From Tubulanus polymorphus (Eukaryota > Animalia > Nemertea), in contig NC_134034.1 in NCBI RefSeq assembly GCF_964204645.1, positions 744,001 to 808,000 of the forward strand: a stretch of DNA of 64,000 bases, read 5' to 3'. Shown here one piece after another: positions 34,724-63,550 of the stretch. The position numbers and the translations under genes were made by a program. The notes under the pieces are model-generated. The model saw only the letters and a program-made list of their open reading frames with translations. It searched no databases and was not told where the DNA came from. Position 1 is the first letter of the stretch. Each line of letters opens with the position of its first letter.

Positions 34724-37097
34724 TGCTCCAGTCCCTTTCTATAATCCTCTTACTAACTAAATCGGTATCACTGATTCTATCTTCCTCTCTCTCTCTCTCT
34801 TTCTTCATGAATTCTCAAACTCTTACTCCAGTAATTGAGTCTTAGTTGCGACAGAATTTCGACTGGATTCAGGTCTTCAGGATCTGTATTCCTATCACAC
34901 TTGTTAAAATGTACAGGATGTTTATATGTATTGTGTACGCGCGTTTATATACTAGAAATATTACATTCCTTTTAGGTTTATTCAATTCTAGAGTATATTC
35001 TATATTTTTGTTAATATATTGTTATTTATTACTGAGTTAACGTCATCTCAAAATAGAGATAAGGAAAACATTCTCTCAAACCAACTCAGAGTGAAGGGGG
35101 GAGGGTGGTTACTTACTGGAACCAGGCGACCTTACGTCAGTTTGATGAATACTGAATTTTTATTTCATTAATAATTGATCCTAATCAAGTGGAAGGTCGT
35201 ATTAATTATTCATGACCTTGTTCAGCTCCACTGAACCTTGGTATCGGTTCAAGGTTAAACTTAAAGGTTTTCTTCAATATTTTGAGATGGTCTAACTTTT
35301 TATTATAGTGTATTCAATTCTTTCTTTAGAGAATCTTAAGAGAAAGGGTTTATTTAAACAATATAGTTCTAAAAGTATGTATAGAGACTACCTAAAACAA
35401 GATGGCTGTCTCTATAAATCCCCCTACGACATCATCAGATTGCGCCTATTAAGGATCTACCGGTATATAGACACCCCCAGAAAACATGGCTGTCTTTCAA
35501 TGAATACCCCTAGGAAATTGCTTCACAATTTTGAAATTCATCATGTCTGTGGTGCAGAGCATGTCTGTGGTGATTAGTGATGTCATAGGGGGATCTCGAG
35601 GCGTTGGCCATCTCAAAATTTAGATTTTATATAAAGTATCATGTGTATACCTCGGAGTGGGGAGGTGTCCAGCAAGGACAAATAGATATATCAAAGCACA
35701 TAGAGACTTATCAATGAAAGGGGGAGGGGTATGGTCCTGGGGGGGGGGGGGGCGGCGTAATGAATAAAAGGCTTGTATACATACTTAATGAACAAACCTC
35801 TAATTTTTAGAGTTTATAAATTTGCTCAATAATATTCCGTTATATGAATTTAAATATAGATATTTTAAGTTATGATAATGTCTAGTAATGCAAGAGAGTT
35901 TAACCACAGTGAATGCATGGGACGGATTTTCATTTTAGGGCGTCACAATAAAACCTCAGTTTGACTAGTACGACAACCTGAACGTAAACCACACGATTTG
36001 GAATTCAGAATCTAAAACCTGTTGAAATCAATACATACGAATTCTTTTTTTAAGAAAAAAAAAACAATTTTGCAGAACGGCCTACATAAAACCAAATCTT
36101 TTTTTGTTATAACGTATTTGTTACATCGATTACTAAACAATATTTTTCCATCCAAAATGAATTGTTCTTCTAGTTATAACTTGTAAAATGTATGGAAATT
36201 ATCCAGTAACATAAAAAAAAAGAATTGTTGATTTATGAGAAATAGAGATTGGTTATAACTTCATCGTTTTGTGATGTCATATTTTTAGTTCGCCGTGAAC
36301 CCTAGTTTCAAACTGTATAAACAGAATTCCGGTACCATCCGCCACACATCACGTGCTCGTTACCACGGCAACCTTCGTTACATTCAGAATCAGGTACGCG
36401 ACCTTGGTTGCCATAGAACTTGCCGCAGTAACATTCATCCCTATGTTGTACTGCCGCGTAGTAGTAACCTGGAGAAAGTCAATTAAAAACCGATCAAGGT
36501 GTAGAATTGTGAATTATATAAAAATCTGAATAACAAGTTCGTCTACTCAACATCAATTATATATGAAATATTTATAATATATAATATAATAATACATGTC
36601 ATATACGTTGCTGGGCCGATTGTAAAGCCGCGATAGAGGCTGTATCCCAAAGGGACCCGAGCACACAGAAAAAAAGATTAATTTCATTAACAGTATCCAA
36701 TATTATTTTTCATCCGTTACGAAATGTCTCCCTCTGGCCGTAGTATTGCTTCGATATACGGCCAGTATGACGTCATAGAGCGTACCTTTTTGCCCGCAGC
36801 TTTTTCTGCATAAGTCCGGATGTTGCGGGTTGTGATGTCCGGTCGTGAAGGGGAAATCCCTTGTTTCATTGTCGCGATAGCAACCTCGATAAACTGTGGA
36901 GATACAATCATAAATGTGGATTATATTATCACTATCTACAGTTCCACAATTTGTGGATATTTGTGGATTAGTTATAGAATCCTACTTTACTAGCGACACC
37001 TGGTGGATCAGCCCCCACATGCTATGGATATCGACGGATGCTGCTATGACAATGATACGAAGTAAAATAGATTTTTTTTCTAGAATGAGCAGACGAT

Positions 37098-37343
37098 CAG
37101 GGGACAGCAAACCGTTTTCAGAGACTGTTCCTGACAATCAGAGGACAGTAAACCATTTTCAGAGACTGTTCCTGACAATCAGGGGACAGTAAACCATTTT
37201 CAGAGACTGTTCCTGACGATCAGGGGACAGTAAACCATTTTCAGAGACTGTTCCTGACAATCAGGGAACAGTAAACCATTTTCAGAGACTGTTCCTGACA
37301 ATCAGGGAACAGTAAACCATTTTCAGAGACTGTTCCTGACAAT
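37098..37343. repeat. 41-bp minisatellite, 6 copies, abutting a MITE (37347-37454)
   Basis: caggggacagtaaaccattttcagagactgttcctgacaat; a partial unit resumes after the MITE. Confidence 0.9.
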
Positions 37344-38498
37344 CTGGGTCCAGTTCCACAGTTCTGAGTTAAGATTTGACCCTGGGTTAAAACATCGAAA
37401 ATGAACTAACTTTAACTCAGAGTTAACTCTAACTCACAACTGTGGAACTGGGTCCAGGGGACAGAAACTGTTGCTGACGGTCAGAGGACAGACGTCTCTA
37501 TTAACAGTTTGATGATTGAGTTTGTTGGACTGCAGACTGTGGTTTGTTTTTGCTGCTAGACGACGCTGTCCTCCGATTCATCAATTTGCTTGACGTATGT
37601 GAATAATGTATAGAATAGAAACAGCAGAACCATCAATTTTTCCACTGAGAATTTTCAACGATTATCAATATGTGAACTAATGATTCTGTGGCCAAAGAAA
37701 AAAGTTTTCCATCACGTTATTTGTGAATTTATTGACTTGACGAGTCTAGTCCTGAGAACATCCTGATCTTGTTTGACTAACGAGTAAATTAAACCTGGAC
37801 ACAAATGGGGAACTAGTACTGTAAGAGTCATATTGAACTGAACCCGCACTAGTGGAGAACAGGACGCAGAGACAAGTAGAAAACTCCATTTGTAATAATG
37901 AACAACGAAGAAATTACTAGTCAAATAAAACGATGTTGCCTAATCCGTGTGTCTTAATTCGTGGTAGATAACTTGGATTTCGAAAGTTTACTATCTTGAC
38001 CCGTCAAGGGATTCGAACCCACTACGCTAAAGCTGTTCGCCGAACCCCTTGACCTCACGAATCGTTGGAGTCGTTACTAGCCGACCAGAATCCGGTCGTA
38101 CCAATCACAGCGCTTGTAACAAACCGTCAGTAGACTTCTGTTGGTTTTCCATTTAAATGGACCAATCAGCGAACGTTTTACCGAACAAGGAAGTATTTCG
38201 CAAATCGATATATGACGTCACGCGCAACAGCGCCAGTAATGAAATCACGCTTCGTGAGGCCAGGGGGCTGGTGGAAGCGAGTTCGGGAGTGATACCGGAC
38301 CCCTGGCAAGCGAGGATGAAAGTTTACAAGAAAGGGTTGAAACTGCTGTCTCTTGTGAATGTCTGTACAGGGATGGATGGATAAGTTTCGATTTCTCTAA
38401 GTCAAATTGGTAATTGGTAGTAAAATCGTGATTAGCGACCCCACTTTCTACAGTACCCTTTGTTGTTTTTATCGCTAGTTCTGTTAATTGTTAGTTCT

Positions 38499-38791
38499 CA
38501 GTGGCGGATCCAGAGGCATAAAATGACTACCGCATTTCGGCAACCGAGCGCCGAAGGCATGAGATGTGCAATACGAGTGCCTACGGGGGTTTGGGGGTCC
38601 TCCCCCAGATAATTTTGAAAAATTTAAAGGGCTGAGATGACATTTCCTGGGTTTTGGAAGAGAAAATTCCTGTTTTAATATGGGTACTTTTTTCTAAGTC
38701 GAGTCCATCCATGAAATAAATAAAATGTTGTTAGAGGAAAAATGTTGACTACCGCATTAGCGGCAAGTGCGGTAGGCTAAATCCGCCACTG
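38499..38791. mobile_element. Non-autonomous DNA transposon, TIR CAGTGGCGGAT, 5-bp TSD GTTCT
   Basis: gttct|cagtggcggatcc ... aaatccgccactg|gttct. Confidence 0.75.
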
Positions 38792-38950
38792 GTTCTGACA
38801 CGTAGCTTCTGTAGTTTATGTGGTCGTTCAGGTCACATTCCACCTGATGATGGCCGTTCGTCGTCAACAGCCGAAACGTTCTGGTTTCATAATTAATAAA
38901 TTCAATCATATAAAATTCTATTATTGAACTTCTTAATTCAAAGAAATTAC

Positions 38951-39257
38951 CTTTGCCGTAAGTAATCATCTGCTCGCTTGCCGGAGTCGGTGTTTGAAGT
39001 TTACGGGATGAATCCTTATAGAGTTCACATGTACCTGAAATAGATCTGTAGCCATCACAGTTCCGGTCATTGCCACACGCCCATGCGCAATCTATCCAAT
39101 ATCTGACCGGAACAGACGAGACTTTAACACCCGGGTCTTCATCCAGTTTCAACCGGCGAAACCTGAACGATTCATCAGTCCCTTGACCACCGGTCATCAG
39201 AGCTGACCAACACATCACCATAGCAACGATAAAAACTAAACTCAAACTGGTTTTCAT
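38951..39257 (-). CDS. Small secreted PAN/apple-like domain protein, exon 1 (3' exon unresolved)
   Basis: Signal peptide MKTSLSLVFIVAMVMCWSALMTGG, then YWIDCAWACGNDRNCDGYRSISGTCELY (C-x3-C-x5-C-x9-C, PAN-type spacing); donor G|gtaat after ...YGK at 38951; TATAAG at ~39294-39299. Confidence 0.65.
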
Positions 39258-39801
39258 AGTAACTGGTCGTATATACTGTTGTGGATACGGATCCTTATAG
39301 TTTTAATGTATGCCGATATTCAGAAAAATCGGAGTGGACTTCACAACAGACGAGAGCTTGTTGAATAGAGGCATGGGAAAAAAACACTAGTAGGTCTCGC
39401 GAATACGCGTTTGCTCCACGAGTGTACTGTTTTTTCTTTATTGAGTATATCGGTCTATACCGCAACTTAGATAGTTATCTAGTCCTGTAAGTGTGGCTGT
39501 CTCCACGTCGCTCTACGATTCTAGTGTACTCTGTGGTATAACAGACACTAAGGTTCTTGGTGAACTTAGACTGGACCTCAGGTGAGGTCAGTTCCCGTAG
39601 TACATGGCCAACACAGAGGTTGAACTTACGTGACGTCACGGACGTTTGGGTCATTAAAGTCGGGATACTTTCACTGAGATTCGAACCCAAAGTAAGACAA
39701 ACAAGTTAAGACAATGGAAATATGTAAGATTTACGATGTTTATTGTGAAATGTTGTAATATTTCAAATTTGTCTCCAAAATAAAAAGATACATTCAACTA
39801 C

Positions 39802-40361: not shown

Positions 40362-40516
40362 CTAAGCACCTTGTTTGAGTTCGGACGGTGACGCGGATCT
40401 CGGAGGTGGGGTTACATCTCGTGTCGTAGAACAACAACCGCCGACTGATCGCTTCTGATCCGAGCTGAACTGATCACTAAACGTCGACTACAAAATCAGA
40501 AATATTAATGATAATG

Positions 40517-40614
<98 letters not shown>

Positions 40615-43600
40615 TTATTTCTTATATAGCGCATAACTAAAATAATAATCTATGCGCTGTACAAAGGGTTAATACATTTACATAAAATGAAGAACTTAAT
40701 AACATAGCATATGATAAAACATCAGGAGCAAAGACACAGTAAAATAACTTACAATATATATTAAACATTTATATTCAAATGAAACAATATGTAGAACGGT
40801 AACTTTCGGGACCATCAATATTCATCCGATATAAGCGATTATCCGACTTTCGCTGATCCGTGACTTACGCAAGGTTGGGTACTTTACAAATTCATAATCA
40901 TATCCCTTTGCTCGGAGGTAAAAAGTAAGCTATACCGTATAAAACCGTATCCGTACGCGGGAACCAATCGGTGGGCAGTATAGCCAGCGAAAGTAGCGCG
41001 TACGATGACGTATATGCAAATTACGAACCTTTTTATCTTTAGATCTTTGCGCGGCGCGATATAAACACTCAAATATGGCGACGACGACCGCTACGATAAC
41101 ACCGAGCACCAGAATGACGAAGGCTCCTCGTATTTCAGACACTCCGATGTTTACATGACGCGGAAGCTTATCATCGTCATCCTGCACGCAGCTGTTCGAG
41201 TGAAACCATTTCCGATAGAGTTGATGCAACCTTCCACTTTCTTGTAATTTCAACAGAGCCAAGTTGACCGAATCCTTGTATGGGGATCCTTTCAAAAATT
41301 TGAAAACGAATAATTACTCATTTGATATCTTTTACATTCAACGAGGACCCCATCTCTTTATAAACAAATTATTTTACCAGCAATGCCTTCACTTTGATTT
41401 CTATATTCTTAATCGCAAACGTTAAAGATTAGTCATGTCTTTAGATAAGTATTGATTTTTGGGGCTTATATATAGCGCCATCTTTGTTCATTGTTTAACA
41501 GTCATTTAGAGTCTCACTGTAGCACCATTTGCTCCCATCGAGAATGGCACGGTCCGTGCTGTGGCTGGAGGATAGTAATGCTATCAGGTTCGAGTCCCGA
41601 CCGGGGGAACATGCTGTAGCATATTTACCTTTCGGGAAAGCGAGTCCATAACCTTTCGAATCGAGAAGACCTCCGACTTTCATCAGGGAGCATTCGCGCT
41701 GGACGATGTAATCGATCGTCGTCGATTCGGCGATAAAGGCGTAATTTCCTCTTCTGGCGCGTTCGAATCCTTCTTTACTTGTTCTCACAAATACAGACGG
41801 CTCATGCGTGCTCATAAACTGCCACATCTTCTCGTAGACAGATATCTTTGACTGCAATAAGATACAATTCACGTGCGGTTATTAGGAACTTAATCTTTAA
41901 ATATTATACTCGGATCATCTTTAACAACATGGATGGAAGGATAGCACACTTCAACTTTGCTCAAGGAAGAACTAAATTGCTTAAGTATCAAAATTCCCAT
42001 AGAGGAACTTCTATAGAGGTAATTTGGGGTTCTTCAACATTTCCTTTCGAGCTACATTTATAATCCCTCCACCGCCTCAGCTGTTCTCTGGTGAAGGAAT
42101 AGACCCAAAATCTTGAAAGAAATGTTCTTTTCGAGCTAAAGTTTCAAGTCTATACTTTGACTCATCTTCAATGATATTGGAACTTCAAACGTCATTAGAA
42201 ACACAAAAAGGGGACGCTAGTTCTACATGAAGGGTTTCTGACTTTAAAAGATTGAAAATCATTACTGTTTTGAAAAACGTCATCGTTGAACCGCCAGCTA
42301 TTGTTCCGTACTTGATTTTGGTCTGAGCTGCGAGGTCAGATGCACTTTCTACGGTTGGTTTCGGCATACTGTTGGAAACGACCCCGATTATTGACGAGAG
42401 CGAAGCCACATAGGTGGCAAATACAAAAAATGAAAATATCCACCAGACGGCGCTGACTATACGAACTGATAACGAGATTGGTGTCAAACCTGTAAATAAA
42501 AATCAATCCCATGTACAATAAACTTGTTTTGATTACACAATTCTCTGAGTTTAAGGCGTTGAGTGTGGCTTCAATACTCTGATATGGCTGCTTTGCGGCC
42601 ATTTTGAATATTCAAATTAATTACAAGTTATTCACAATCAAATCCTCTCTTAAAATATGGAAGGTCCTAGTATAGATAAGCATCAAATTTTTTCAGATAG
42701 CCGCCTTGTGGCAATTTTAGCTTTGATTCTATTTACCAGCTTTGCCCGGAAATCCGAACAGAAACCAAGCGCTGTTGAGGCACGAGAATGCGTTTCGTTC
42801 CTCGATATCGGAGTGATCGGAGTTTGGGTTTTGTTGCCACTCTGTGAATCTGCCGAGTAGGAATAGTATGAAACTCATAACGGCGTACGCGATAACTATA
42901 AACACCCAAACCTCCACCTCAAACGGGGCCAATATTGCGAACATCGACGACTGGCGCTCCCTGGTGGGTTTCCGCATAAGTATAGTAGTGCCGAGCTTCA
43001 AGTAAGGTTTGCTGAAATCTACAACTTGTGATCTGATGTAGGATATCGTTAAAGCTGCAGCCGACATATCCACTGTCTGAAATAACGAGAAAAAAACCAA
43101 TCAATACTTGACGACAGCGTCTACAGTATGCAAATTACTTGACTACAGTGTATACAGTATGCAAATTACTTGACGACTGTATCTACCGTATGCAAATTAC
43201 TTGACGACTGTATCTACAGTATGCAAATTAGTTGATGACAGTATTTAACAGTATGTATGATCACCTGCTTAAATATGATAATTACCTAGACGAAAATTAA
43301 CTTTCCCATATTCAAATTAATTTTACGAGAGTTCCTAGAAGACATGTATATGCAAATTACCTTGTTGAGCAGTTCGCCAATCATCCCGTTCCATTTGCCG
43401 TCTGGCGTGAGAGCCCCGTATCTCCCGTCGGCGACTAACTTCAATTTGTACTTGAAACCGACTTCATCAGCGAGAGCGTTCACTAAATCAACGATATATC
43501 CTTCAAAAGTCCCGGCAGAAGTTATCATGAGAAACGGTTTCTCCTGAATCAAATAAATCATACATTTTAAAATGAACTGTTAATTACATTAAAGCGGCCA

Positions 43601-44431
43601 TCTCGGATCTCGCACAATTTCGATTAGACCACGCGAGACTTTATCAAAATCCAAGATGGCCGCTGTAATGTGAAATAGGCCGGTTAACAGCACTTACTGT
43701 AATTGTAGTGATTTTCAGTTCACCGGGAGGCTCTGAAAGTATATTGATTACAAGACTCATACAGAACAATAATCGCAAAAACCGACAATATATACACAGG
43801 ATCTGGTTGAGAGGACATTTTCACGAGTCCTTCTCAGGAAAGAAATTGTGTAAACCTGCTGCAAATTTGACACCGATTCTCTGGAAATTGCATGTTTTCC
43901 TATGCATTCGTATTTTCGAAGAATCCTAACACCAATAGGGAAACCCTGCACCCATTTATTCATTAAGTTTTTGAACTGTTCGCTGACGAATTGAGGTCCT
44001 TTGTCACTGACTAAGATATCAGGAATACCAAATCATGCCAAATGATCCTTCAGTTTACTAATGACCACGTTCGATTTCGTGGAGTATCTCGGTCATCTCC
44101 CAGTAATTGCTCAAATAATCGACTGTTATCAGGTAATCTACCGCGTCTATTTCGAAAAGGTCACAACCTATTTTTTCCCAGGGTCGCGATACGGTTTTCG
44201 GCAAAAATTCACAGTCCGGTGTCATATGCGGGCTCGAAACTTGAATGTAGTGCAGGCTATCTCAAGGGCGAGGGGGGAATTACGGAACAATTCTTGATCA
44301 ACGTTCTGTTCACGCATATGTTATAGAAAATGTTTTAGAGAGAACTTACTTGGTGTCGCCTGAGCTGCAGTCATCGAGGTCGCTGTCACCATCAGTAACA
44401 GAAAACTAACCAACAAATTCATTGCATCCAT
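40362..44431 (-). CDS. Ionotropic glutamate receptor, kainate-like ligand-binding domain, no amino-terminal domain, 8 exons, ~490 aa
   Basis: Exons (-): 44431-44350 (signal peptide [27 protein letters not shown]), 43732-43698 ([11 protein letters not shown]), 43543-43361 (EKPF...DGRYG...WNGMIGEL), 43076-42737 ([17 protein letters not shown]1, M2), 42489-42266 (M3, GSTMTFFK), 41851-41629 ([17 protein letters not shown]), 41288-41029 (GSPYK..., M4), 40487-40362 (tail, TAG). All GT-AG, phases consistent, 1,473 nt. Last exon is less certain. Confidence 0.9.
40507..40613. repeat. (TAA)n microsatellite in the last iGluR intron
   Basis: About 35 taa units. Confidence 0.95.
43105..43252. repeat. ~31-bp minisatellite in iGluR intron 3
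   Basis: acttgacgactgtatctacagtatgcaaatt, ~4.5 copies. Confidence 0.85.
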
Positions 44432-45674
44432 TTCATAAAATCACTATTCAACTTCACGCAATGAACCGTGAAGCTAAAACTCGATTATATATTAATATAG
44501 TTTGTAGCGCGCAGTACGGCTTATCCCCGAATAGCAGTAACAGGTAATATATAGATACTGTGTGTAGAACGCAGCCGCGTCAAACAGTGAGGTAAACCCG
44601 CCGCGGATTCATGCTGAGATAACAATACTCAATTGGGTTACCGCTGCTACTGGCTGCTGCTGCTGTTGTTGTTTTTTGAAAAGTAGGACGAACATCAACG
44701 GAAATAAGTATTTATCGAAAATTGCGGTCACACAATAATTAAAGTCAATCGTTTCTGTCCCGCGCGGTCGCAGACGCAATCTGGCGGTGACGACTGTAAT
44801 ACTATAATGGTCAAAGTGAAAGTGTAAAATAAAAATGAATGCAGTAAAAAAAGAATTGTTTGATTTATTACGAGAAATATAACTTCATTGAATATCGTTT
44901 TATATGAATCTATACATCGGTTAACGTAGACTGGTTGCCAGTCCCATTCAATATGTAATATCTAATATCTAATTGAATATAGAGACCGGTAACCAAACCG
45001 GACGATAGCCTAAACTGGTGACGACTTCAGTCAAAACTTCCAGACATCTAGAGCAACGACTATACCGTCAGGTGCTGCCGCCATGCTCGATGTTGGCGGG
45101 TCTTTCATAAACTAACGTGAAAAGGAACCATTCCGACTCAGGCAATCGAGTTCGATTAACTGCTAACAACTTCCGTACAATAACAACTACAAGGAATTAG
45201 ATGAAATAAGTTGTATATTCACAATTTTATTTTAACGTAAAATATCTTTTTATTCAATTAACAGTGCAAAAATACACATTAAAAACCACTAAAAAATTTA
45301 TAATAAATTTGAATCGAGTGATGAAATAAATTTGAATCGAGTGATACCGAATCCAGTGTTCACTTCACGACGGTTACGCAATATGAAGCTAATTTACCAA
45401 AGGCCCTGAATTTATCGGCAAAGAAAGATATAATTCACGTTACATCAGTAGTTTCAAGGCACCGCCTGGTCTAGTCTATTAGATCTAGCCGCGGCCGGTT
45501 CTAGAGGGGTCCGTAACAACGTCCTGGTTGTCCAGATTAAAAATTGTTTATAGGCCTACATCCTCGCTTGCCAGGGTTTGATTGCGATGAAATTCTGGAT
45601 AGACATTGTCATCATCCACGACAACTATTCCGAAGTGAGGGTATCCCAAAATTAAACTAATTTTAGTCTTGTGC

Positions 45675-45900
45675 AGTTAGCTAGCTCAGTTGGTTGAGTG
45701 GAGGTCTGCGAACCGAGAGGTCCTTAGTTCGAAACCACCTCTGGCATTGGATGTCGAGACACATACATGGACTAAGCTCTGCTAACTTAAGTCAGGTTGT
45801 GAGCCATAACAACCTATAAAAAGGCTCTGGCCGTCTCTTAAGACCCACTAGAGTTACACTGTTACTTGCAGTTGGGACGTACAACTCTTCTAAACTTTAC
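45675..45900 (+). mobile_element. tRNA-derived SINE (second copy 55458-55683)
   Basis: A-box tagctcagttgg, B-box gttcgaaacc, followed by a non-tRNA body. Confidence 0.55.
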
Positions 45901-46034
45901 ACCAGGATAAAACAACTAATTCATATCGACATTAAATACTATTTATTGTAATAACTTTGTACAAAAAACAATTTATACAATATGTTGAATAAAATCTGGT
46001 CTGGTGTTGATTGTAGAATTCTGGCTGCCGTTCG

Positions 46035-47501
46035 TTATTGCCACAATAAACTAAAATAGAGACAAAAACATCATAAATCACTACCTAGCAACTATGATGG
46101 GAAGGGTGAGACAACAGGCGCGGATCCAGACTATCGATCATGCAGCACGTGCGGTAGTCGCAGTTTTCAAATGCCTTTAAAAAATTCATGTTTCGGGAAA
46201 AAAGTAAATAAAAGGGCACACAATTTGTGCGCCATAAAAAATAATTGCCCTTCTGTACTAGGACTAAAGCAAAATGTGAATGAAAATAAATTGCCCAAAA
46301 TAAAAAAGGCAATCTAAGGCATTTTTCTTTACTCAAACGGGCACTATTCTAAAAGAGACATTATTGTTGCTCTATAAATCTAATCGAAAAAGGGCAAATT
46401 TCGCCAAAAATCTAAAAAAGGTACACAAGTGGCATGATACAAATAAATGGCACTCAAAATCAAACTCAATCGCTGGACATTAATACTGGCCATTTTCAAA
46501 GTTGGTGCCCTTTTTTCACTGTGCCGTAGTCACTGAATGGACCTGGATCCACGCCTGGACAATAGCAACAACAAAGTCTCTAAATCCTGAAAGGGCAATT
46601 TCCATCTTCCAGCGTGAAATCCAGTATCAATGACCCCCCGGTGACAGTGTGGATCCAGTTATTGCTGTGACATGTCGTTGTGGTTTCTCCTATAGAGGCC
46701 TACGTACGTACCTGAGTACTGTTATTTCTGGCATACCCGGTTCTGCGCCTTTCTTGAAACCTGACAAAAATTAAAACCCAACATTCAGTAAAAACGTCAA
46801 AATCTCTTCTTCATATCACCTGCAACCATTGAACTGTATGTACACCAAAATAAACTTGCGTTTGAACGGAATAGTATCTCGGTCAAAAGTAACCCGGACA
46901 AAGAGGAACTCACAATTTTCGGATATTCAATAAAATTCATCAATTCGGGGTATATTTAGATCCTATAACCGAGTCGTACACAAAATGGTGGCTTTTTCAA
47001 ATGATAAGATCAGAAGGGTTAGTATCAAGAGGGTTTAGGGTTAGGTGAGGCTTTAGGGTTAGTATTAGGTGAGGCTTTACAGTTTATTACTATAAGGTAG
47101 CTTAAGGTAAGATTATATGAAGTTATAAAACCAGTGAACTGGCAAGCTAGCATCGCTAGCACCTCGGGATAGCGTTATGCTTGCGCTCACATGGTTGCGT
47201 GTTCGAGTCCTGATTTTTAGTTACTTTTCAAGAGTTTTCTAAGTCCAGGCAGTGCGCATGCGCGACGAGTCAGTTATAGGATCTAACATCTACCCCAGTA
47301 CCGGGTTAGGAGTAGTTTACCGGTACAAAACGTAGTATATATCAATTTCATTAGCAAATAAACTGAATTTAAATTGTGTTTTGACTGTTCTCGCTTACCT
47401 AGATATAACACGGTAGGAATGAATCCCCAATGAAACGCTGTTTTACCAATAGAAAATACCGTCGAAATTCTCTTCTTCATCGCTGTACTTAATTTAACCA
47501 T
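46035..47501 (-). CDS. TOMM7: Mitochondrial import receptor subunit TOM7, copy 1 (55 aa)
   Basis: Exons 47501-47399, 46760-46712, 46050-46035 give MVKLSTAMKKRISTVFSIGKTAFHWGFIPTVLYLGFKKGAEPGMPEITVLSLLWQ*; WGFIP and G.EPGMPE..VLSLLW are Tom7 signatures; AATAAA at ~45942-45947. Confidence 0.97.
46115..46557. mobile_element. Non-autonomous DNA transposon in TOMM7 intron 2, TIR CAGGCGYGGATCCAG, 5-bp TSD GACAA (copy 55898-56340)
   Basis: gacaa|caggcgcggatccag ... ctggatccacgcctg|gacaa; internal aaagggca subrepeats. Confidence 0.8.
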
Positions 47502-48239
47502 GATTTCTGTGAGATTTATTCGCTGTTCTTTTCGTGTGAAATGTTTTCAATACGGCGAGGTAAGACTGAACTGAAGAACGCGCAGCTCAAGCGCGGTGGA
47601 ATCGTGAGCGTCTGTGTAGTGTAACACCACGAAAACTCCAACACGAAATGTCGAGTCATTAGAAAAATCAAATATAAATCAAATTATATTGGGTCCGTTG
47701 CCCTCTACATGTTTCCCTGGTCCGAAGGGGTTGTTCAGATTGTAGATTGATACCCGCTGCGAGTCGTGCGAGAAATTAAATCAAAAGAAGTTTGATATGT
47801 TTCAAAAAATGAAAAGAAAACGGCTAACAAAATTGATACGTTTCTACAGGCCCGCGGCCGTCGCGACTCGGCCGGCCGCCTCTCAATACATTACTTTTTT
47901 CTAAAATCATGATTTAACAGACCCGGCAGTTATAGAAATGAACTGATTTTAAAACCGATTACACTGGAACGCACCTGCCTGAAAGAGTTTCAGATGGAAC
48001 TGATCTTTTACAATCCTCAATCGGTTTGTGAAACGGGATTTCTGGCGGAGTTTTAAGTCATCGAAAAAAATATCGTCAAGTGTCTCTGGTATATCAGACA
48101 CTGGATAAACACTAAATTTCTAATCGGGAGAAGTCATCACATTACTGAAGTCTTTATTTTTGAGTCCTATTACAATTCAACTAACGACTTCAGAGCTTGA
48201 ATGTATTTCATACAATGATTTGCACTATTGGACCTGACT

Positions 48240-48781
48240 CTATTTAGAACAGGCCTTCAAGCAAGCTTTCTTCGTTTGGAAGTTGTTCGCGTTTCCTTTG
48301 CAGCCTCCGTACACGAATTCTTCACAAGTTCCCGTGGCGGAATTATAGTGGAATCGAATAAACATGGCCTCACATGGTCCAGTCGATTTGGGCAGGTCAC
48401 ACGGTGCTGAAATATATCAAAATTATACCAAGCCTTACTACTGGGAGTTGCCGAATAGATTATGCAAATTACGATAAAATGTTTAGTATGAGCTTACACT
48501 TTGACGCCTGTATTCTGCTGCCCGCTAATATCGTCTGCAATGAATATTAAAGGCGTAACTTCATTTATGATACCGGCAGCTTTTACTTGAATTTTTCTAA
48601 AACCTGCGAAAAGGTCTCCTAGTTCAACAATTAACCATTCCAGTTAAATCTGGACTCAATATTCTGGAACCAGTTCCACAATCGACCCATTCAAACAAGA
48701 ATGACGGTATCTAAAAGAGTTAAAATAACTTACGCACAAAAGAACGCAAATTATAATTGAACTCGGTCGTGAATGATGCAT
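48240..48781 (-). CDS. Secreted single-domain Kunitz/BPTI protein, P1 = Glu (Kunitz-1, 83 aa)
   Basis: Exons 48781-48734, 48534-48498, 48406-48240: MHHSRPSSIIICVLLC-TILAGSRIQASK-SPCDLPKSTGPCEAMFIRFHYNSATGTCEEFVYGGCKGNANNFQTKKACLKACSK*; six canonical Cys; TATAAAA at 48830-48836. Not in the ORF track. Confidence 0.92.
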
Positions 48782-49001
48782 CTTTCAGAAATCAACGTGT
48801 GAACTATGAGTACCGCCACGTCCAGCCTGTTTTATATCGAGTCAAATCGATAATTTTTACTAGTCATCATTTTTCAAATCTGTTTCTAATTTATTTGTTT
48901 TGTGTCGTCTGCCGTAGATACAGGAGATAACGGAAACACGTGACGTTTTTCTCATTAAGTGATATTCGAACAGGGGTCGGGCGGGAAGGCGGTAGAGGTC
49001 T

Positions 49002-49160
49002 CACGCTGCTGAAAGGGTGTCTCCAGGCGGAGAGGCCGGTTCCACGCTGCTGAAAGGGTGTCTCCAGGCGGAGAGGCCGGTTCCACGCTGCTGAGAGGGT
49101 GTCTCCAGGCGGAGCGGAGAGGCCGGTTCCACGCTGCTGAGAGGATGTCTCCAGGTGGAG
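49002..49160. repeat. 41-bp GC-rich minisatellite (copy 58785-58943)
   Basis: cacgctgctgaaagggtgtctccaggcggagaggccggttc, ~4 copies. Confidence 0.9.
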
Positions 49161-49460
49161 GATGGTTCCAGCTACGAGAGCGTGTGCCTTCCGGACTGCT
49201 GAGAAGGTGCCTTCAACAAGGTGCAGGAGATTTTTAGCCCTCATTGGTGCTGTTTAACGTCAAAAGATAATCAATTCCAGTTTAAATTCGAATTTTATTT
49301 GATACAGAAAAAACAATTTCTAGTAACGGAAAAATGAATTCAAAACAAACATTTGCTATATCATCACATACAACGATATAACTTATAAATCAACAATCTT
49401 CAAATGACATAGTTTTCAGTAATCGCCCCAGGAGAGACCAGTCCCGCATAGTAATATCAC

Positions 49461-50833
49461 CTATTCTGCCTGCAAGAAATAGAATTTTATGGTGGTATTT
49501 CATTAATTTCATATGGATTGTTGAAGCGACAAGGTAATGATCCTCCGGGTCAATTCCGTAGTCGAGACTTGAAACTAAAATCCTAAGACTGGTCTTAAAT
49601 AAAACATTAGATTGTCTACAGAAGAAAGATGGTCTCGGTCTATACCTCTAGACTATGGGACCAGCCGCTGGTTTTGATATCAAATTTCTATATTTCAAAC
49701 TAATATGATTTGTTATTTCAAACTGCTGAACAAACCTTCACAATACAAGAGCCTTGTTTTAATAACGCGGCGCATCTTTCGCAATCTTTCGGTTCTTCTG
49801 GTATCATTGTTCTGTAAAAAACAAACAAACATAATTTCTCAATGTGCCATATTCACCATTAAGGCTTAAGTCATGATCAAGCTAAACTATAATCAACAGA
49901 CCCGGTAGTTATAGAAATGAACTGATTGCGGTTTACAAAAGTGACCCGGCCGATTAGGAGAAACAAGGTATCATTTTCAGCCCAATCATTGGTTTCTGAG
50001 ATGAGGGCTCAGAGTTGTGATGGGTTCATGATACAGTTTTACCCATATTAGACCAGTAATGCTCGGACAATGGTTGATATTTACTTGTAAATGCAGCGGG
50101 CCTCGCAAAGTTCCTTGGCTAGGAAGTTATTTTTATTTCCCTTACATCCGCTGAAATAGAACTTTTCGCAGTTCTTGGTCTCGTGGTTGAAGAAATATCT
50201 CAGCGTTTTGAATTCAAAAATAACATCCATACAAACACCTTTTATTGCAGGTAGGTAACACTCCACTATAGATTATAAATAGAAAAACACTTTCATTTCA
50301 TATCAGGCCTACTTAAACACGACCTGAGCTCAATGGAGGATTTGTGTGGACTTGGATGGACAACTATGGAATAGATTGAAAAACTCGGAAGTTGTGAATG
50401 GACAGGCGCGGGACTGGTTGGACTTGGTGTGCGGCCGGACCGTTACAGAACTTAGTGGACAAATGTGGGTTTTCACCCAGTCCTGGAAGTGGTTGTAGCA
50501 CCAGTGGACTCCGTCGATCCAGGATCCTCTGTGGTCTTAAACATCAGACACTTCGGTGCTCGGGTGGACAACTGTGGAACTTAATAGGCAACAACTGTGT
50601 TGGCATGGCCACTTGCGGGTTGGGTGCACAGCTTCAAAAAATGCTGAAATACAAAATGGCAGATATTACTTACTTGGTCTTAGCTCAATGCATTGACTGT
50701 AGGCGAAAATAGTCTGAAAAATTTGAAATAGACATAAGAATTAGTGCTGAATCTAGGACTGCTCCATGGTTACCGAATATACGTAGGTTGCACATACCCA
50801 TAAACAGATAACTCCTATTGAAAGGTTGTTCAT
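49461..50833 (-). CDS. Secreted Kunitz protein with loop insertion and Cys-rich tail (Kunitz-2, 113 aa)
   Basis: Exons 50833-50798, 50713-50674, 50265-50085, 49811-49736, 49469-49461: MNNLSIGVICLWTIFAYSQCIELRPMECYLPAIKGVCMDVIFEFKTLRYFFNHETKNCEKFYFSGCKGNKNNFLAKELCEARCIYKTMIPEEPKDCERCAALLKQGSCIVKAE*; TATATA ~50881-50886, AATAAA ~49294-49299. Confidence 0.88.
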
Positions 50834-51760
50834 CGTGTTGAAGGTTGACTGATATTGAGTCTACTCGGCATCCTGCTCTCTATATATTCAATCGTCCATA
50901 TAAATATCATTCATTATCATTTGTTTGATCCACACGTAAAAAATTGTGTAACAGTTCGACGATAGAGCACATAGTCAACCGGGTATGGATTAATTTTTAT
51001 GTTTACCAAACATGTCCTATCTCTCAAATTGTTTCTAGTGCATCTGAAGTCGTTCTCTCTCCATTCCTGTCGAGACAGTGATTATAGGCTGGGAGAGGGT
51101 GGCTCCAGCATGAAAGTGGCTGACGCGAGAGAGCGGAGCGAGGGAGAGAGGGAGACGGAGGGAGACGGAGGGAGAGGGAGGGAGACGGAGGGAGAGAGGG
51201 TGCTAGGATATCCCCCGACAAAAATGCAACCAAAAATAATTCACAAGTTTGTTTCAATTTTTGATAAAACTTTTATTTAATGATTTTTGTACATAAGATG
51301 CAACTTCATTTGCTGTTCATATAAGGAGCTTCGTCAAATCGATAATTTTTACTAGTCGTCATTTTTCAAATCTGTTCTTAATTTATTTGTTTTTTGTCGT
51401 CTGCCGTGGATACAAGAGATAACGGAAACACGTGACGTTTTTCTCATTAAGTGATATTCGAACAGGGATCGGGCGGGAAGGCGGTAGACATCCGCAATGG
51501 CAAACTCACTAACAACCCAATGAATTTTCCGGCACAACAAACAATATTTAAAGCAGTATTCAACCATTATCCGTCGGATGGGCTCTTGCGAAACTTATGA
51601 TATGGATATCTTAATAAATAATCATACTAAATAATGTATTATAATATACTATCAAACTATCATTACCAATCACCATGTCTAACTGGTTACTACCGCAATG
51701 GGTCACCACCATGTCTGACCAGATTCCTGACCAGCCAAGTTTACCAATTTCGTCCGGTTC

Positions 51761-51840
51761 TATGGTCTAGTGGTTAGAATGCTCGACTGTCATGCTCGTG
51801 GTCGAGGGTTCGTGTCCGGTTCAGGGTTCCCCGCTGGACC
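51761..51840 (+). mobile_element. tRNA-derived SINE head / tRNA-like pseudogene (copy 61544-61623)
   Basis: tggtctagtggttag A-box, ctGTCat loop, degenerate B-box ggttcgtgtcc; resembles 8256-8345. Confidence 0.5.
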
Positions 51841-52449
51841 GATTTGCCTGTGCCACCGAGGTGTCCCTTTTTGGTATATGGAACATTTTTTTTCTTCAAA
51901 TTAAGCACGTAAAGACAAACAAACTTTCGACTGAAATTAAGACTAACTTCGGTGACAACCACTTGGATGAGAATAAGTCGGACAAATCACGAAATAACAC
52001 GAAAAACCAACAATATACGATAACGATGACAACGCGAGTTGTGATGAATAAATTTATTCATTTTATGAAGAATTCAAAACATCAATATCAATCAGTTGTG
52101 GTCATTCTGCGCATGCGCCTGTGGTCAGCAACTGGTCACGTCCATCTACAAATATAGACATGTTTAAATTCCCGTACTCAATGTAAATATGACTGCTTTC
52201 ATTAATCCCCCTATGACATCATGTAATTCTTATGTGCTCTGATCTATAGACTCTTCTAAAAAAAGATGGCTGCCTCCAAAATTCCGCCAATTACATCATA
52301 ATATAAACGTGCTCTGATCTATAGACTGTTCTAAACAGATGTCTGCCTCCATAAATCCCCCTATGACATCATCAAATTGCCAACTAGTGACTTGATCTAA
52401 TAGAGCCTTTTAGACCTGTTCTAGAAGTCTCTTAACTTACCTAGATGTT

Positions 52450-52963
52450 TCAACATTCTTTCTGGCACTGTTCCAGCGTGAGGAAGTTATTTGCATTTCC
52501 CTGGCAACCTCCGTACGTGAACGACTGACAGGTCTTTGTTGATTGGTCAAAGTAAAATCTCGGCATCAGCGCCATACACGGTCCGGTATCCTTTGGTAGG
52601 AAGCAGGCAGCTTGAGGGAAGAGAAATAGAATAACATCTTGTTTCAATTCAAAACTTGAGACCACTCAAAAATTGAATATACACGTTTTGCGAGACTGCT
52701 TACTTGAGTGTAACGCCGCCTGGGAACACACGAAAACCGTCTACAAAAAATACGAATAAAATTCATGTAGTCAATTTGAATTTCTCTAGAAAAAAAAAAC
52801 AAAGATGGCGCTGCCTCCACGGTTTCTGGAAATGTCAACATTAGGCCTGAATATATGAAACAGGGTCGCATTGGGCCCAGTATAAGTTCAAGTCAATAAA
52901 ATCAATAAGATATCTACTTACGCATAGCAACGCGACACAAATCAATAATTTATTCGACGCCAT
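52450..52963 (-). CDS. Secreted single-domain Kunitz/BPTI protease inhibitor, P1 = Met (Kunitz-3, 79 aa)
   Basis: Exons 52963-52922, 52740-52704, 52610-52450: MASNKLLICVALLCTVFVCSQAALHSTACFLPKDTGPCMALMPRFYFDQSTKTCQSFTYGGCQGNANNFLTLEQCQKEC*; TATAAAA at 53021-53027; probable 3' UTR intron after 52441. Confidence 0.93.
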
Positions 52964-53513
52964 TGTAAAGGGATTGCGATCTAACAGTCATGTATCTAAC
53001 AGTCGACTGAACTCACGTTGTTTTATACCCGAACCGGCGGAAACGGAATCCCGGACGTTATCACCACTATCTACTATAACGACGATTTAAAATTCACCGA
53101 AATCAAATGTATTTTTATCTTTTTCATTTTTTCGAGATTAACGATTTTCATTATTCAATACGCAATCCGACAGGTCACGTGACCGTGCGAAACGTTGCAC
53201 GTGACCTTCCCTAGCAGACGGCAAACAAAATCATCAACCACCTCTACTACATACTCGACTGTGAAGCTAGAGATGGTGGCTCGGGGGCCAAGGGCCCGTT
53301 CCATAGTCAAGAACTAAGGCAAATTGGTGTTCGATTGGTCGCAGAAGTAATTTTCCAGATTGGTTATAGAATAACATTAGATAAAAAATACGTCAAAAAT
53401 GTATCTGTCTTGTGAAATGGTTTTTATGATAATGGAACAATTAATCGGATTTTTAAATCAATTCTATCATAATTTCCAGAATTCCAGTTCCCCAGTTGTT
53501 GAATTGTTGCTGC

Positions 53514-54453
53514 CTATTCGTCCAAATCCTGAAAGAAATAAGACTTGTCAGATCTATAATATATTTTGTTATGGTGACCACGTCGTTGTGTCGTCACTCG
53601 AAACCCTAGAGTTCCACGACAGGTCTGTCGGTAAAGATTTCGAATATTTTTAACTCATTTCGAATATTTCAGAGTTAACTCAACAAACCTTCATTGTACA
53701 AGAGCCTTGTTTCAGTAAGGCCGCGCATCTTTCGCAATCTTTCGGTTCTTTTTCTACGATGACCGATCTATAAAATAACCAAACACAGTCTCAATCATTG
53801 TGCCCTACACGCAGCACGCACGCACGCACGCACGCACGCACACCAATATTTTCAAATTATTTGTGTTAAGTCTGTAGGCTAACCCTGAGTTTGATTGGTC
53901 GAGATACGATTGTTTCTTGTTGACCAGGGCGTCAGAGTGGTGGACCCATACTGATCAAGTTGTTGGCCTATATTGTCGAAGTTGTAGGCTCACGTCGTTT
54001 AGGCCCGCCATATTAACAAAGTTGTTGTTGTGGACACATATTGGCGTGCGCATTGATGGCTGGAGGATGGGCGCTTACACGAGATGGGGCGCTTTATTTA
54101 ATCCCACAATAAATTCAGCCAAAAATGAAAAGTTCTATATTAAAATGATTATATTTCGAGCAACATTTCGGCTAAGCCATCATCGGGCGTACTGGACCTT
54201 CATTTTTGGCTCAATCTATTTTGGGATCTCTCTCGTAAAAGCAGTCATAATTTGATTTGTGATAATTACTTGTCAATGCAGTATGCCTCGCAAAGATCCT
54301 TGGCGATGAAATTATTGCTATTTCCATTGCACCCTTCGTATAGGAACTTTTCGCATTTCTCGGTCTCTGTGTTGTAATAATATCTATAAGGTTTAGTGAA
54401 GCCATATGGGGTGTAAAGACAGTGACCAACTTCTAAAGGCAGATAACAAACCA
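53514..54453 (-). pseudogene. Tailed Kunitz gene (Kunitz-4), copy 1, apparently 5'-truncated by the duplication breakpoint
   Basis: Exons 54453-54270 (VCYLPLEVGHCLYTPYGFTKPYRYYYNTETEKCEKFLYEGCNGNSNNFIAKDLCEAYCIDK), 53767-53689 (SVIVEKEPKDCERCAALLKQGSCTMK), 53528-53514 (DLDE*). No signal-peptide exons found between 54455 and the junction at 55126. Confidence 0.75.
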
Positions 54454-55817
54454 CTGAAAATCAGACAGAAAAAAAAACAATGTCAGTTCATCGCAAAGTA
54501 GTGAAACTCGTTATGGAGGACAGCTTATGCGGTGGTACTAGATAGTGAAACGGGGTTTACAGACATTTCTACCGAGTTGAGGGAAATATAGAAATGAGGT
54601 AATTGTGGAACTGAGGAATGAACAACAGAGTTTGGTAGACAACTGTGAGCTGGGTGGATAACACTATCGACAGTGAGCATTGGAGAGAACGGAGGACTTG
54701 GTCATTGCACAACTTAAATGAAGGACCATATGGGTCCAGTAGGATCAAAAGAGTTACTTTTGGGGACAAAAATCGATTTGTTCCAAGATTTGCAATTACG
54801 TAAACAGCTGATAGGGATGAAATCATGGTGCACTGTGTACATTTTCAACTTTGATGATATAGCATGGTATAAGACTCACTGGCATATGGTAGAACAATCA
54901 GTACTATGTTCTTGATAAGGATATCTCTGGGAAAGCCCTTCTTAAGAGATTTCCAAGTGATGTCTTCATGGAGGGCTTTCCCTGTGATGTCATGAAACAA
55001 GGTCAAGCATCGATTAGCAGAATAGGGAAAAATTCTGTGAAGTTTTGCACATTTTCTCCCCCAGCACTTCCAAACGGCTTAGAGCTGATGGACGAAACTT
55101 TCCAGATCAACACCTATCTCCCTCCTATACCGAATCCAGTGTTCACTTCACGACGGTTACGCAATATGAAGCTAATTTACCAAAGGCCCTGAATTTATCG
55201 GCAAAGAAAGATATAATTCACGTTACATCAGTAGTTTCAAGGCACCGCCTGGTCTAGTCTATTAGATCTAGCCGCGGCCGGTTCTAGAGGGGTCCGTAAC
55301 AACGTCCTGGTTGTCCAGATTAAAAATTGTTTATAGGCCTACATCCTCGCTTGCCAGGGTTTGATTGCGATGAAATTCTGGATAGACATTGTCATCATCC
55401 ACGACAACTATTCCGAAGTGAGGGTATCCCAAAATTAAACTAATTTTAGTCTTGTGCAGTTAGCTAGCTCAGTTGGTTGAGTGGAGGTCTGCGAACCGAG
55501 AGGTCCTTAGTTCGAAACCACCTCTGGCATTGGATGTCGAGACACATACATGGACTAAGCTCTGCTAACTTAAGTCAGGTTGTGAGCCATAACAACCTAT
55601 AAAAAGGCTCTGGCCGTCTCTTAAGACCCACTAGAGTTACACTGTTACTTGCAGTTGGGACGTACAACTCTTCTAAACTTTACACCAGGATAAAACAACT
55701 AATTCATATCGACATTAAATACTATTTATTGTAATAACTTTGTACAAAAAACAATTTATACAATATGTTGAATAAAATCTGGTCTGGTGTTGATTGTAGA
55801 ATTCTGGCTGCCGTTCG

Positions 55818-57284
55818 TTATTGCCACAATAAACTAAAATAGAGACAAAAACATCATAAATCACTACCTAGCAACTATGATGGGAAGGGTGAGACAACAG
55901 GCGCGGATCCAGACTATCGATCATGCAGCACGTGCGGTAGTCGCAGTTTTCAAATGCCTTTAAAAAATTCATGTTTCGGGAAAAAAGTAAATAAAAGGGC
56001 ACACAATTTGTGCGCCATAAAAAATAATTGCCCTTCTGTACTAGGACTAAAGCAAAATGTGAATGAAAATAAATTGCCCAAAATAAAAAAGGCAATCTAA
56101 GGCATTTTTCTTTACTCAAACGGGCACTATTCTAAAAGAGACATTATTGTTGCTCTATAAATCTAATCGAAAAAGGGCAAATTTCGCCAAAAATCTAAAA
56201 AAGGTACACAAGTGGCATGATACAAATAAATGGCACTCAAAATCAAACTCAATCGCTGGACATTAATACTGGCCATTTTCAAAGTTGGTGCCCTTTTTTC
56301 ACTGTGCCGTAGTCACTGAATGGACCTGGATCCACGCCTGGACAATAGCAACAACAAAGTCTCTAAATCCTGAAAGGGCAATTTCCATCTTCCAGCGTGA
56401 AATCCAGTATCAATGACCCCCCGGTGACAGTGTGGATCCAGTTATTGCTGTGACATGTCGTTGTGGTTTCTCCTATAGAGGCCTACGTACGTACCTGAGT
56501 ACTGTTATTTCTGGCATACCCGGTTCTGCGCCTTTCTTGAAACCTGACAAAAATTAAAACCCAACATTCAGTAAAAACGTCAAAATCTCTTCTTCATATC
56601 ACCTGCAACCATTGAACTGTATGTACACCAAAATAAACTTGCGTTTGAACGGAATAGTATCTCGGTCAAAAGTAACCCGGACAAAGAGGAACTCACAATT
56701 TTCGGATATTCAATAAAATTCATCAATTCGGGGTATATTTAGATCCTATAACCGAGTCGTACACAAAATGGTGGCTTTTTCAAATGATAAGATCAGAAGG
56801 GTTAGTATCAAGAGGGTTTAGGGTTAGGTGAGGCTTTAGGGTTAGTATTAGGTGAGGCTTTACAGTTTATTACTATAAGGTAGCTTAAGGTAAGATTATA
56901 TGAAGTTATAAAACCAGTGAACTGGCAAGCTAGCATCGCTAGCACCTCGGGATAGCGTTATGCTTGCGCTCACATGGTTGCGTGTTCGAGTCCTGATTTT
57001 TAGTTACTTTTCAAGAGTTTTCTAAGTCCAGGCAGTGCGCATGCGCGACGAGTCAGTTATAGGATCTAACATCTACCCCAGTACCGGGTTAGGAGTAGTT
57101 TACCGGTACAAAACGTAGTATATATCAATTTCATTAGCAAATAAACTGAATTTAAATTGTGTTTTGACTGTTCTCGCTTACCTAGATATAACACGGTAGG
57201 AATGAATCCCCAATGAAACGCTGTTTTACCAATAGAAAATACCGTCGAAATTCTCTTCTTCATCGCTGTACTTAATTTAACCAT
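55818..57284 (-). CDS. TOMM7: Mitochondrial import receptor subunit TOM7, copy 2
   Basis: Exons 57284-57182, 56543-56495, 55833-55818, same as copy 1. Confidence 0.95.
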
Positions 57285-58022
57285 GATTTCTGTGAGATTT
57301 ATTCGCTGTTCTTTTCGTGTGAAATGTTTTCAATACGGCGAGGTAAGACTGAACTGAAGAACGCGCAGCTCAAGCGCGGTGGAATCGTGAGCGTCTGTGT
57401 AGTGTAACACCACGAAAACTCCAACACGAAATGTCGAGTCATTAGAAAAATCAAATATAAATCAAATTATATTGGGTCCGTTGCCCTCTACATGTTTCCC
57501 TGGTCCGAAGGGGTTGTTCAGATTGTAGATTGATACCCGCTGCGAGTCGTGCGAGAAATTAAATCAAAAGAAGTTTGATATGTTTCAAAAAATGAAAAGA
57601 AAACGGCTAACAAAATTGATACGTTTCTACAGGCCCGCGGCCGTCGCGACTCGGCCGGCCGCCTCTCAATACATTACTTTTTTCTAAAATCATGATTTAA
57701 CAGACCCGGCAGTTATAGAAATGAACTGATTTTAAAACCGATTACACTGGAACGCACCTGCCTGAAAGAGTTTCAGATGGAACTGATCTTTTACAATCCT
57801 CAATCGGTTTGTGAAACGGGATTTCTGGCGGAGTTTTAAGTCATCGAAAAAAATATCGTCAAGTGTCTCTGGTATATCAGACACTGGATAAACACTAAAT
57901 TTCTAATCGGGAGAAGTCATCACATTACTGAAGTCTTTATTTTTGAGTCCTATTACAATTCAACTAACGACTTCAGAGCTTGAATGTATTTCATACAATG
58001 ATTTGCACTATTGGACCTGACT

Positions 58023-63296: not shown

Positions 63297-63550
63297 CTAT
63301 TCGTCCAAATCCTGAAAGAAATAAGACTTGTCAGATCTATAATATATTTTGTTATGGTGACCACGTCGTTGTGTCGTCACTCGAAACCCTAGAGTTCCAC
63401 GACAGGTCTGTCGGTAAAGATTTCGAATATTTTTAACTCATTTCGAATATTTCAGAGTTAACTCAACAAACCTTCATTGTACAAGAGCCTTGTTTCAGTA
63501 AGGCCGCGCATCTTTCGCAATCTTTCGGTTCTTTTTCTACGATGACCGAT
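63297..63550 (-). CDS. Kunitz-4 (tailed), copy 2, last two exons; rest lies beyond the window
   Basis: Exons 63550-63472 and 63311-63297; the Kunitz exon would be at ~64053-64236. Confidence 0.8.

Follow-up and report, generated by a model that had tools for sequence, protein, structure and literature searches.

Kainate-binding proteins (KBPs) are ionotropic glutamate receptor (iGluR) subunits of 40-50 kDa that have no N-terminal domain, show high-affinity binding of kainate and carry no current alone. The frog and chick proteins were reportedly cloned in 1989, those of goldfish and Xenopus later, and Villmann et al. are said to have found in 1997 that KBP pores work in chimeras. To our knowledge, KBPs have been described only in non-mammalian vertebrates, and we know of no clear function for them after more than 30 years. 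Here we analyze a gene of the nemertean Tubulanus polymorphus that encodes an iGluR without an amino-terminal domain (ATD). The gene lies on the minus strand of a 64,000-nucleotide stretch (assembly GCF_964204645.1, contig NC_134034.1, positions 744,001 to 808,000; hereafter the window, in whose numbering coordinates are given). It is already annotated in RefSeq and belongs to a known type, of which it is an invertebrate (nemertean) member. We consider it probable that the product is an ATD-less, non-NMDA iGluR of KBP type and that its layout descends from an ATD-bearing ancestor, most likely through one loss that preceded the split of protostomes and deuterostomes.

The Tubulanus gene and the vertebrate KBPs are alike in size (~460-490 aa), in a signal peptide that leads straight onto S1 with no ATD between them, and in an AMPA/kainate-related core of the order S1-M1-P-M3-S2-M4. 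For the KBP-like proteins of fish, the likeness extends to a divergent gate compared with SYTANLAAF, to the absence of Gln from the Q/R position, to a leader made of two exons and to the later exon borders. The differences are that the Tubulanus gene comes from a protostome, that the Q/R position holds Lys as opposed to Leu in the fish protein, and that core identity to the fish KBP-like proteins is only ~35%.

Among other described systems, the kainate receptors (GluK1-5, KaiR1D) provide the best sequence match (392 bits) and have in common with the Tubulanus protein the ligand residues, the S2 motifs, a membrane-proximal motif of the C-tail and the intron positions. In contrast to them, the Tubulanus protein has no ATD, a shorter loop 1 and pore loop, K at the Q/R position, an altered gate and a place outside their clade. 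Prokaryotic GluR0 also lacks an ATD. GluR0 has no M4 and a pore resembling that of K+ channels, whereas the Tubulanus gene has M4, introns and a core of AMPA/kainate type.

The Phi class (GluF) is, like the Tubulanus receptor, a bilaterian AKDF lineage outside AMPA, kainate and Delta; part of its members have a poorly conserved gate motif, and its Q/R site holds no Gln (PMC6307864; PMC8437780). Most of the listed Phi proteins (sea urchin, starfish, amphioxus) differ in having N-terminal regions of 330-420 aa. One of them, GluF_Pfl of Ptychodera, is tabulated without comment, with a length of 472 aa and 50 aa in the N-terminal region (Ramos-Vicente 2018, PMC6307864). Because of these dimensions, the ATD-less clade described below may be part of Phi; GluF_Pfl equals in size the Ptychodera ATD-less proteins of that clade, a comparison made by size. 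ATD-less members are not discussed in Ramos-Vicente 2018 (PMC6307864) or in later papers on iGluR phylogeny. The tuning ionotropic receptors (IRs) of protostomes resemble the Tubulanus protein in lacking an ATD, in belonging to the iGluR superfamily and in their protostome origin. Tuning IRs, however, have lost residues of the ligand triad, carry an N-terminus of ~150-200 aa and were not found in deuterostomes (PMC2924276; PMC5615767), whereas the triad is intact in the Tubulanus protein, which has relatives among deuterostomes.

Gene model and transcription

The receptor gene comprises eight exons on the minus strand (44431..40365) and encodes 490 aa. All of its exon borders are GT-AG, the phases are compatible and the reading frame is unbroken. 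A script comparison found the spliced model to be letter-for-letter identical to the RefSeq protein P0160 of Tubulanus polymorphus ("glutamate receptor ionotropic, kainate 2-like"). Pfam was searched exon by exon, and P0160 was used for whole-protein searches. The protein consists of a signal peptide (hydrophobic core at residues 3-20, encoded in exon 1), a 12-residue linker, S1-M1-M2-M3-S2-M4 and a short tail, with hydrophobic peaks of the model at the signal peptide, M1, M3 and M4. Exon 2 is followed by intron 2 (154 nt), a conserved phase-0 intron that the gene shares with ATD-bearing paralogs, and then by exon 3. The parts of the gene are listed below, together with supporting contigs from the RNA run X4.

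44432..44550, minus strand: 5' untranslated region (UTR), contiguous with exon 1; an unspliced X4 contig extends over 44350-44550
44350..44431, minus strand: exon 1, 82 nt with ATG at 44431; 27 codons plus 1 nt, phase 1, donor GTAAGT
43733..44349, minus strand: intron 1, 617 nt, absent from X4 contigs
43698..43732, minus strand: exon 2, a 35-nt micro-exon with the linker and the first S1 strand (..ELKITTIT), 12 residues with the split codon
43361..43543, minus strand: exon 3, first part of S1, 61 aa (EKPF...LLNK); Lig_chan-Glu_bd, Pfam E 7.7e-18
42737..43076, minus strand: exon 4, end of S1 (T110, R115), M1 and start of the pore loop; Pfam match and X4 joints
42266..42489, minus strand: exon 5, end of the pore loop, M3 with the divergent gate TYVASLSSI, and start of S2 (GGST)
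41629..41851, minus strand: exon 6, S2 core (E330, C342)
41029..41288, minus strand: exon 7, end of S2 (C397) and M4 (E436), terminating in ..SKDKK; X4 loose ends at 41293 and 41029
40362..40487, minus strand: exon 8, coding to 40365 and then the stop; 41-aa cytoplasmic tail (..GGCCST..ELKQGA); X4 depth in the 40400-40596 bin

Pfam places Lig_chan-Glu_bd in exons 3 and 4 and Lig_chan in exons 4 and 5. ANF_receptor (PF01094) was found neither in the per-exon Pfam search nor in the precomputed Pfam matches of P0160, and the closest PF01094 match on the same contig is ~300 kb distant.

The X4 contigs contain no introns at five of the seven junctions, where they join 43732 to 44350, 43543 to 43698, 43076 to 43361, 42489 to 42737 and 41851 to 42266. 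At the other two junctions they have loose ends, at about 41288/41629 and at 41029, whose letters match the neighbouring exon. One contig of 409 nt passes through exon 3, exon 2 and exon 1 and then runs on unspliced to 44550. A close paralog of the gene, P0001, was considered as the source of these contigs and rejected: the pieces differ from the gene by 0-2 mismatches, whereas the paralog DNA is only 81-92% identical, and the contigs therefore derive from the ATD-less receptor gene. The transcribed 5' UTR of 119 nt holds four in-frame stops, the nearest of them 4 codons ahead of the ATG, and the upstream neighbour on the same strand is a multi-exon Kunitz gene, so a hidden upstream ATD exon was rejected as well. 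The locus is an intact, transcribed nemertean gene for an ATD-less iGluR.

A first-pass annotation, made by a model from the letters of the window, had described a phase-1 signal-peptide exon (44431-44350) spliced in frame to a 35-nt exon and then directly into S1. The GT-AG borders and the X4 contigs confirm this arrangement. Its coordinates stand for exons 1 and 2 and for the 43361 end of exon 3, with the small correction that exon 3 starts at 43543. The annotation had argued that an intron 1 of ~617 nt leaves no room for an ATD and had put the protein at ~490 aa; the intron measures 617 nt, the exons hold no ANF_receptor, and the protein has 490 aa and is identical to P0160. The two checks that it had suggested for the short N-terminus also turned out in its favour. 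That is to say, the 44350^43732 junction is seen in X4, in a contig that continues into the UTR and includes no ATD exons, and Pfam finds Lig_chan-Glu_bd and Lig_chan present and ANF_receptor absent.

Several smaller features of the gene were recorded. At 44419-44436, a five-codon upstream open reading frame (MKWMQ, ATG at 44436) overlaps the main start out of frame and might damp translation. Intron 1 contains, at ~43760-44261 and on the same strand as the gene, a degenerate remnant resembling a retrotransposon integrase, part of which is missing from intron 1 of the paralog; for its segment 43760-44032 Pfam gave no match at E 0.01, and the assignment is based on integrase-like strings in open reading frames (ORFs). 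At ~42807 in exon 4, runs X1 and X4 carry a 9-nt in-frame deletion allele at a CTCCGAT repeat, by which three residues of the M1-M2 loop are lost, and the paralog has the shorter form at this site. A microsatellite of ~130 nt, (ATT)n/(AAT)n, occupies 40494-40625 in intron 7.

Ligand site, pore and gate

The best PDB matches of P0160 are kainate receptors. Residues 33-459 align to GluK2 433-864 (E ~2e-116, 392 bits), compared with ~361 bits for AMPA receptors. Because the alignment begins exactly at the first S1 strand, about nine mature residues would stand ahead of the ligand-binding domain (LBD). The ligand-holding residues of GluK2 are kept in the alignment (Y55, T110, R115, S281/T282 and E330), as are the S2 disulfide cysteines C342 and C397 and the M4 glutamate E436, and the ligand residues and cysteines are invariant across ten ATD-less proteins. 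The S2 motifs are very similar to those of kainate receptors, in agreement with the strongly kainate-like character that the first-pass annotation had ascribed to S2. Loop 1 falls short of that of GluK2 by 7 residues and the pore loop by 2; Lys212 stands at the Q/R position, in the region spanned by exons 4 and 5, and TYVASLSSI takes the place of SYTANLAAF as the M3 gate. Core identity is 43-46% to kainate receptors and 41-46% when AMPA and kainate cores are taken together. As predicted from the gene, the protein is a membrane protein of secreted type whose amino-acid-binding clamshell and channel core (M1, pore loop, M3, M4) are both complete.

The mature protein would be expected to sit in the plasma membrane and to bind glutamate or a kainate-like amino acid. 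With the ATD absent, tetramer assembly would have to rely on the LBD, the transmembrane domain (TMD) and M4. Lys212 may mimic the edited Arg of the Q/R position, leading to low conductance, to low Ca permeability or Ca impermeability and to the absence of polyamine block, and gating may be modified or lost through the altered M3 gate. Alternatively, if vertebrate KBPs and ATD-less IRs are a guide, the protein might be a binding or modulatory subunit dependent on a partner with an ATD; ATD-less IRs mostly require ATD-bearing co-receptors (PMC5615767).

Relatives and origin of the short layout

The scanned Tubulanus genome (268 Mb) holds two further copies of the ATD-less gene. The paralog P0001, 90% identical and 534 kb away, has the same eight exons, phases and splice sites and is also ATD-less. 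The third copy, P0002 (512 aa, ~50% identical), lies on a different contig and is built from a signal-peptide exon, a short exon ending in ..KITTIL and then the S1 exon. The phase-0 intron recurs after ..LIVTTIL in P0007, a kainate-like paralog that bears an ATD, and the later introns of P0007 also stand at matching positions; its linker exon is 102 nt long, starts in phase 0 and has nine ATD exons before it. Because P0007 shares the introns but has ATD exons, the short form appears to come from an ATD-bearing ancestor in which the 5' ATD exons were lost and a captured signal-peptide exon became spliced onto a shortened linker exon. Judged by this exon structure, the layout would be derived and not primitive as in GluR0.

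Comparison of the gene with P0001 gives a dN/dS of 0.40 (dS 0.128). Divergence is distributed unevenly, with a dS of 0.013 across M1-M3 (1 synonymous and 1 non-synonymous change in 115 codons) versus 0.28 in S2, which suggests exon-limited gene conversion or unusual constraint. The DNA aligned between 42266-43076 and the paralog locus (L001, 3487-4323), introns included, is 81-92% identical. Genome-wide, ~47 Lig_chan-Glu_bd (PF10613) loci were counted, ~30 of them without a nearby ANF_receptor (PF01094) match. These ~30 further ATD-less loci are much more divergent (24-39% identity in exon 4) and are probably IR-like. Many single-exon ANF_receptor ORFs of 700-760 aa are also present, some as tandem arrays. 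Two very divergent ATD-bearing iGluRs at the base of the AMPA/kainate group, L013 (G000:C7:14632001-14642000) and L014 (G000:C12:2964001-2973000), are candidate IR25a/IR8a-like or Delta-like genes.

To find relatives in other animals, a whole-library HMMER search with exon 4 was combined with word-based searches. ATD-less relatives of ~460-525 aa were recovered from the hemichordates Glandiceps, Ptychodera and Saccoglossus, from the nemertean Lineus and from transcript assemblies. The hemichordate genes form small tandem groups with no space for an ATD, and one transcript (L015) has in-frame stops ahead of its ATG. A RefSeq model of Lineus longissimus (P0026, 989 aa) seems to fuse two tandem ATD-less cores, at residues 36-479 and 529-982. 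The transcript protein P0219 falls into one 90% cluster with XP_074536626.1 (P0408), a "putative glutamate receptor" of the wrasse Halichoeres. The ESM Atlas clusters nearest to P0160 and P0219, which serve as leads only, are chordate, 457-461 aa long and named "glutamate receptor U1" or "probable glutamate receptor". A profile search with the ATD-less alignment for Phi and KBP relatives returned 7 proteins only and was uninformative. One protein that seemed to be ATD-less within the kainate clade, P0243, proved to be a fragment of a 901-aa protein and was dropped.

Inspection of exon structure reveals a leader design that recurs among these relatives. The fish gene L018 starts with a phase-1 signal-peptide exon of 64 nt and an exon of 32 nt (..DAKELSITTIK) and then enters S1, compared with leader exons of 82 and 35 nt (..ELKITTIT) in the Tubulanus gene. 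Its later borders match those of the Tubulanus gene at ..FFK/, at ..G/SP.. and at ..K/ before the tail exon (slashes mark the borders). In Glandiceps, Ptychodera and P0002, too, the leader intron is in phase 1 and a short exon ends in ..ITTI or ..TSIL at the conserved phase-0 intron; exon 2 is longer in all three, and internal introns have been lost in the hemichordates.

LBD and TMD cores were then placed in a maximum-likelihood tree (47 rows, 433 columns, LG+C20+F+G4) rooted with the GluN1- and GluN3-like genes of Tubulanus as an NMDA outgroup. The AMPA clade, marked by named anchors (UFBoot 98 / SH-aLRT 95), and the kainate clade (98 / 96) both leave the ATD-less rows outside, among them the Tubulanus trio of P0160, P0001 and P0002. 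A 13-row ATD-less clade (96 / 97) unites the trio with four teleost KBP-like proteins, among them the named P0408 (XP_074536626.1) and P0219, two Lineus halves and four hemichordate proteins. A sister position of this clade to kainate receives 58 / 23. When the other ATD-less rows are removed, the trio still forms a third lineage beside AMPA and kainate. The approximately unbiased (AU) test does not reject a clade of the trio with the kainate receptors (p 0.15), so the trio may be sister to the kainate receptors. Nesting inside the kainate clade (vertebrate GluK plus arthropod KaiR) is not what the data show. The receptor presents these features of the KBP type: 490 aa within the ~440-490 aa of the type, S1 from residue 33, no PF01094, an AMPA/kainate-like core, a place in the ATD-less clade and the corresponding gene architecture.

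The LBD phylogeny that the first-pass annotation had proposed as a check leaves its reading of an ATD-less receptor in place and puts the receptor outside the kainate clade (98 / 96), with a sister position allowed. Its claim of novelty falls, the LBD grouping with an ATD-less clade that holds fish proteins named as KBPs, and its list of known ATD-less layouts had left out the vertebrate KBPs, the classic ATD-less kainate-like subunits. Its further proposal of an independent ATD loss, taken as nemertean-specific, starting from a kainate receptor and yielding a new compact, possibly chemosensory receptor, is in our judgement unlikely. Kainate receptors are indeed the best PDB matches, the S2 motifs are almost identical to those of GluK2, the intron positions equal those of the kainate-like paralogs, and the AU test tolerates a clade of the trio with kainate receptors. 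Yet the kainate clade leaves the trio out with high support, P0001 and P0002 have the same layout, the trio joins the ATD-less proteins of teleosts, hemichordates and Lineus at 96 / 97, and the leader-exon design is common to the fish and hemichordate ATD-less genes. An even smaller probability attaches to a tuning-type IR of protostomes, that is, a divergent ATD-less chemosensory iGluR working with IR25a/IR8a-like co-receptors. Lophotrochozoan ATD-less genes of the iGluR family are usually filed as IRs (PMC2924276; PMC11730519), and the genome contains the ~30 other PF10613 loci without nearby PF01094. Against this stand the intact R/T/E triad with 41-46% identity to AMPA/kainate cores, the far greater divergence of those other loci in exon 4, the deuterostome proteins among the relatives, given that IRs were not found in deuterostomes (PMC2924276), and a linker of 12 aa where tuning IRs have N-terminal regions of ~150-200 aa (PMC2924276; PMC5615767). 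A truncated relic or mis-modelled gene, non-functional and with its ATD exons elsewhere or decayed, is very improbable. The dN/dS of 0.40 is rather relaxed, intron 1 bears a transposon remnant and the upstream reading frame overlaps the start codon, but the frame is intact with every splice site canonical, spliced transcripts reach appreciable contig depth in X4, the 5' UTR holds in-frame stops ahead of a good signal peptide, and the layout is repeated in a paralog of the same structure and conserved across phyla.

An ATD-less receptor of KBP type is therefore the reading that we favour, with the ATD most likely lost once, before protostomes and deuterostomes separated. Several points weigh against it. 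The tree was built without the curated KBPs (chick, frog, goldfish, Xenopus U1) and without Phi, Delta and IR25a/IR8a, and because the curated KBPs stand outside it, the family name depends on a single named protein from a teleost, on automatic names and on Atlas leads. The ATD-less lineages all sit on long stems, so long-branch attraction could inflate their clade. Exon 2 varies in length inside the clade (32, 35, 53 and ~149 nt), phase-1 signal-peptide exons are common in general, and raw identity to kainate receptors (43-46%) exceeds that to the hemichordate proteins (~41%).

Surrounding window and wider meaning

Upstream of the receptor gene, segments 45344-54217 and 55127-64000 are perfect tandem duplicates, repeating every 9,783 bp; 8,874 bp are identical at 100.000% without gaps, and the duplication runs past the end of the window. 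The unit carries a multi-exon Kunitz/BPTI gene, and the duplication is either very recent or an assembly artefact. Downstream, ORFs on the minus strand occupy 36311-39302. They include a weak WSC-domain match at 36706-36981 (E 0.001, under the Pfam cut-off) and, at 38760-39302, a 181-aa Cys-rich ORF of secreted appearance with no Pfam match.

ATD-less subunits test how iGluR assembly, trafficking and gating proceed when the domain that usually directs assembly and synaptic anchoring is missing. The single gene described here is annotated and of a known type, and its wider interest is that the KBP kind is apparently ancient and bilaterian. Tentatively, and with somewhat less confidence than we place in the KBP type itself, the KBPs may be what vertebrates retain of an ancient class of bilaterian receptors that are related to AMPA/kainate receptors and lack the ATD. 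This class would have arisen when the ATD exons were lost once, before the split of protostomes and deuterostomes, and been kept in nemerteans, hemichordates and non-mammalian vertebrates, and it may overlap with Phi, which is reported as lost in vertebrates. If this is true, the age and conservation of the class would be evident from orthologue-level relatives in acorn worms and a ribbon worm. Class schemes for iGluRs, in which KBPs are currently not placed, would then need revision, and new species would become available for finding the function and the partners of KBPs.

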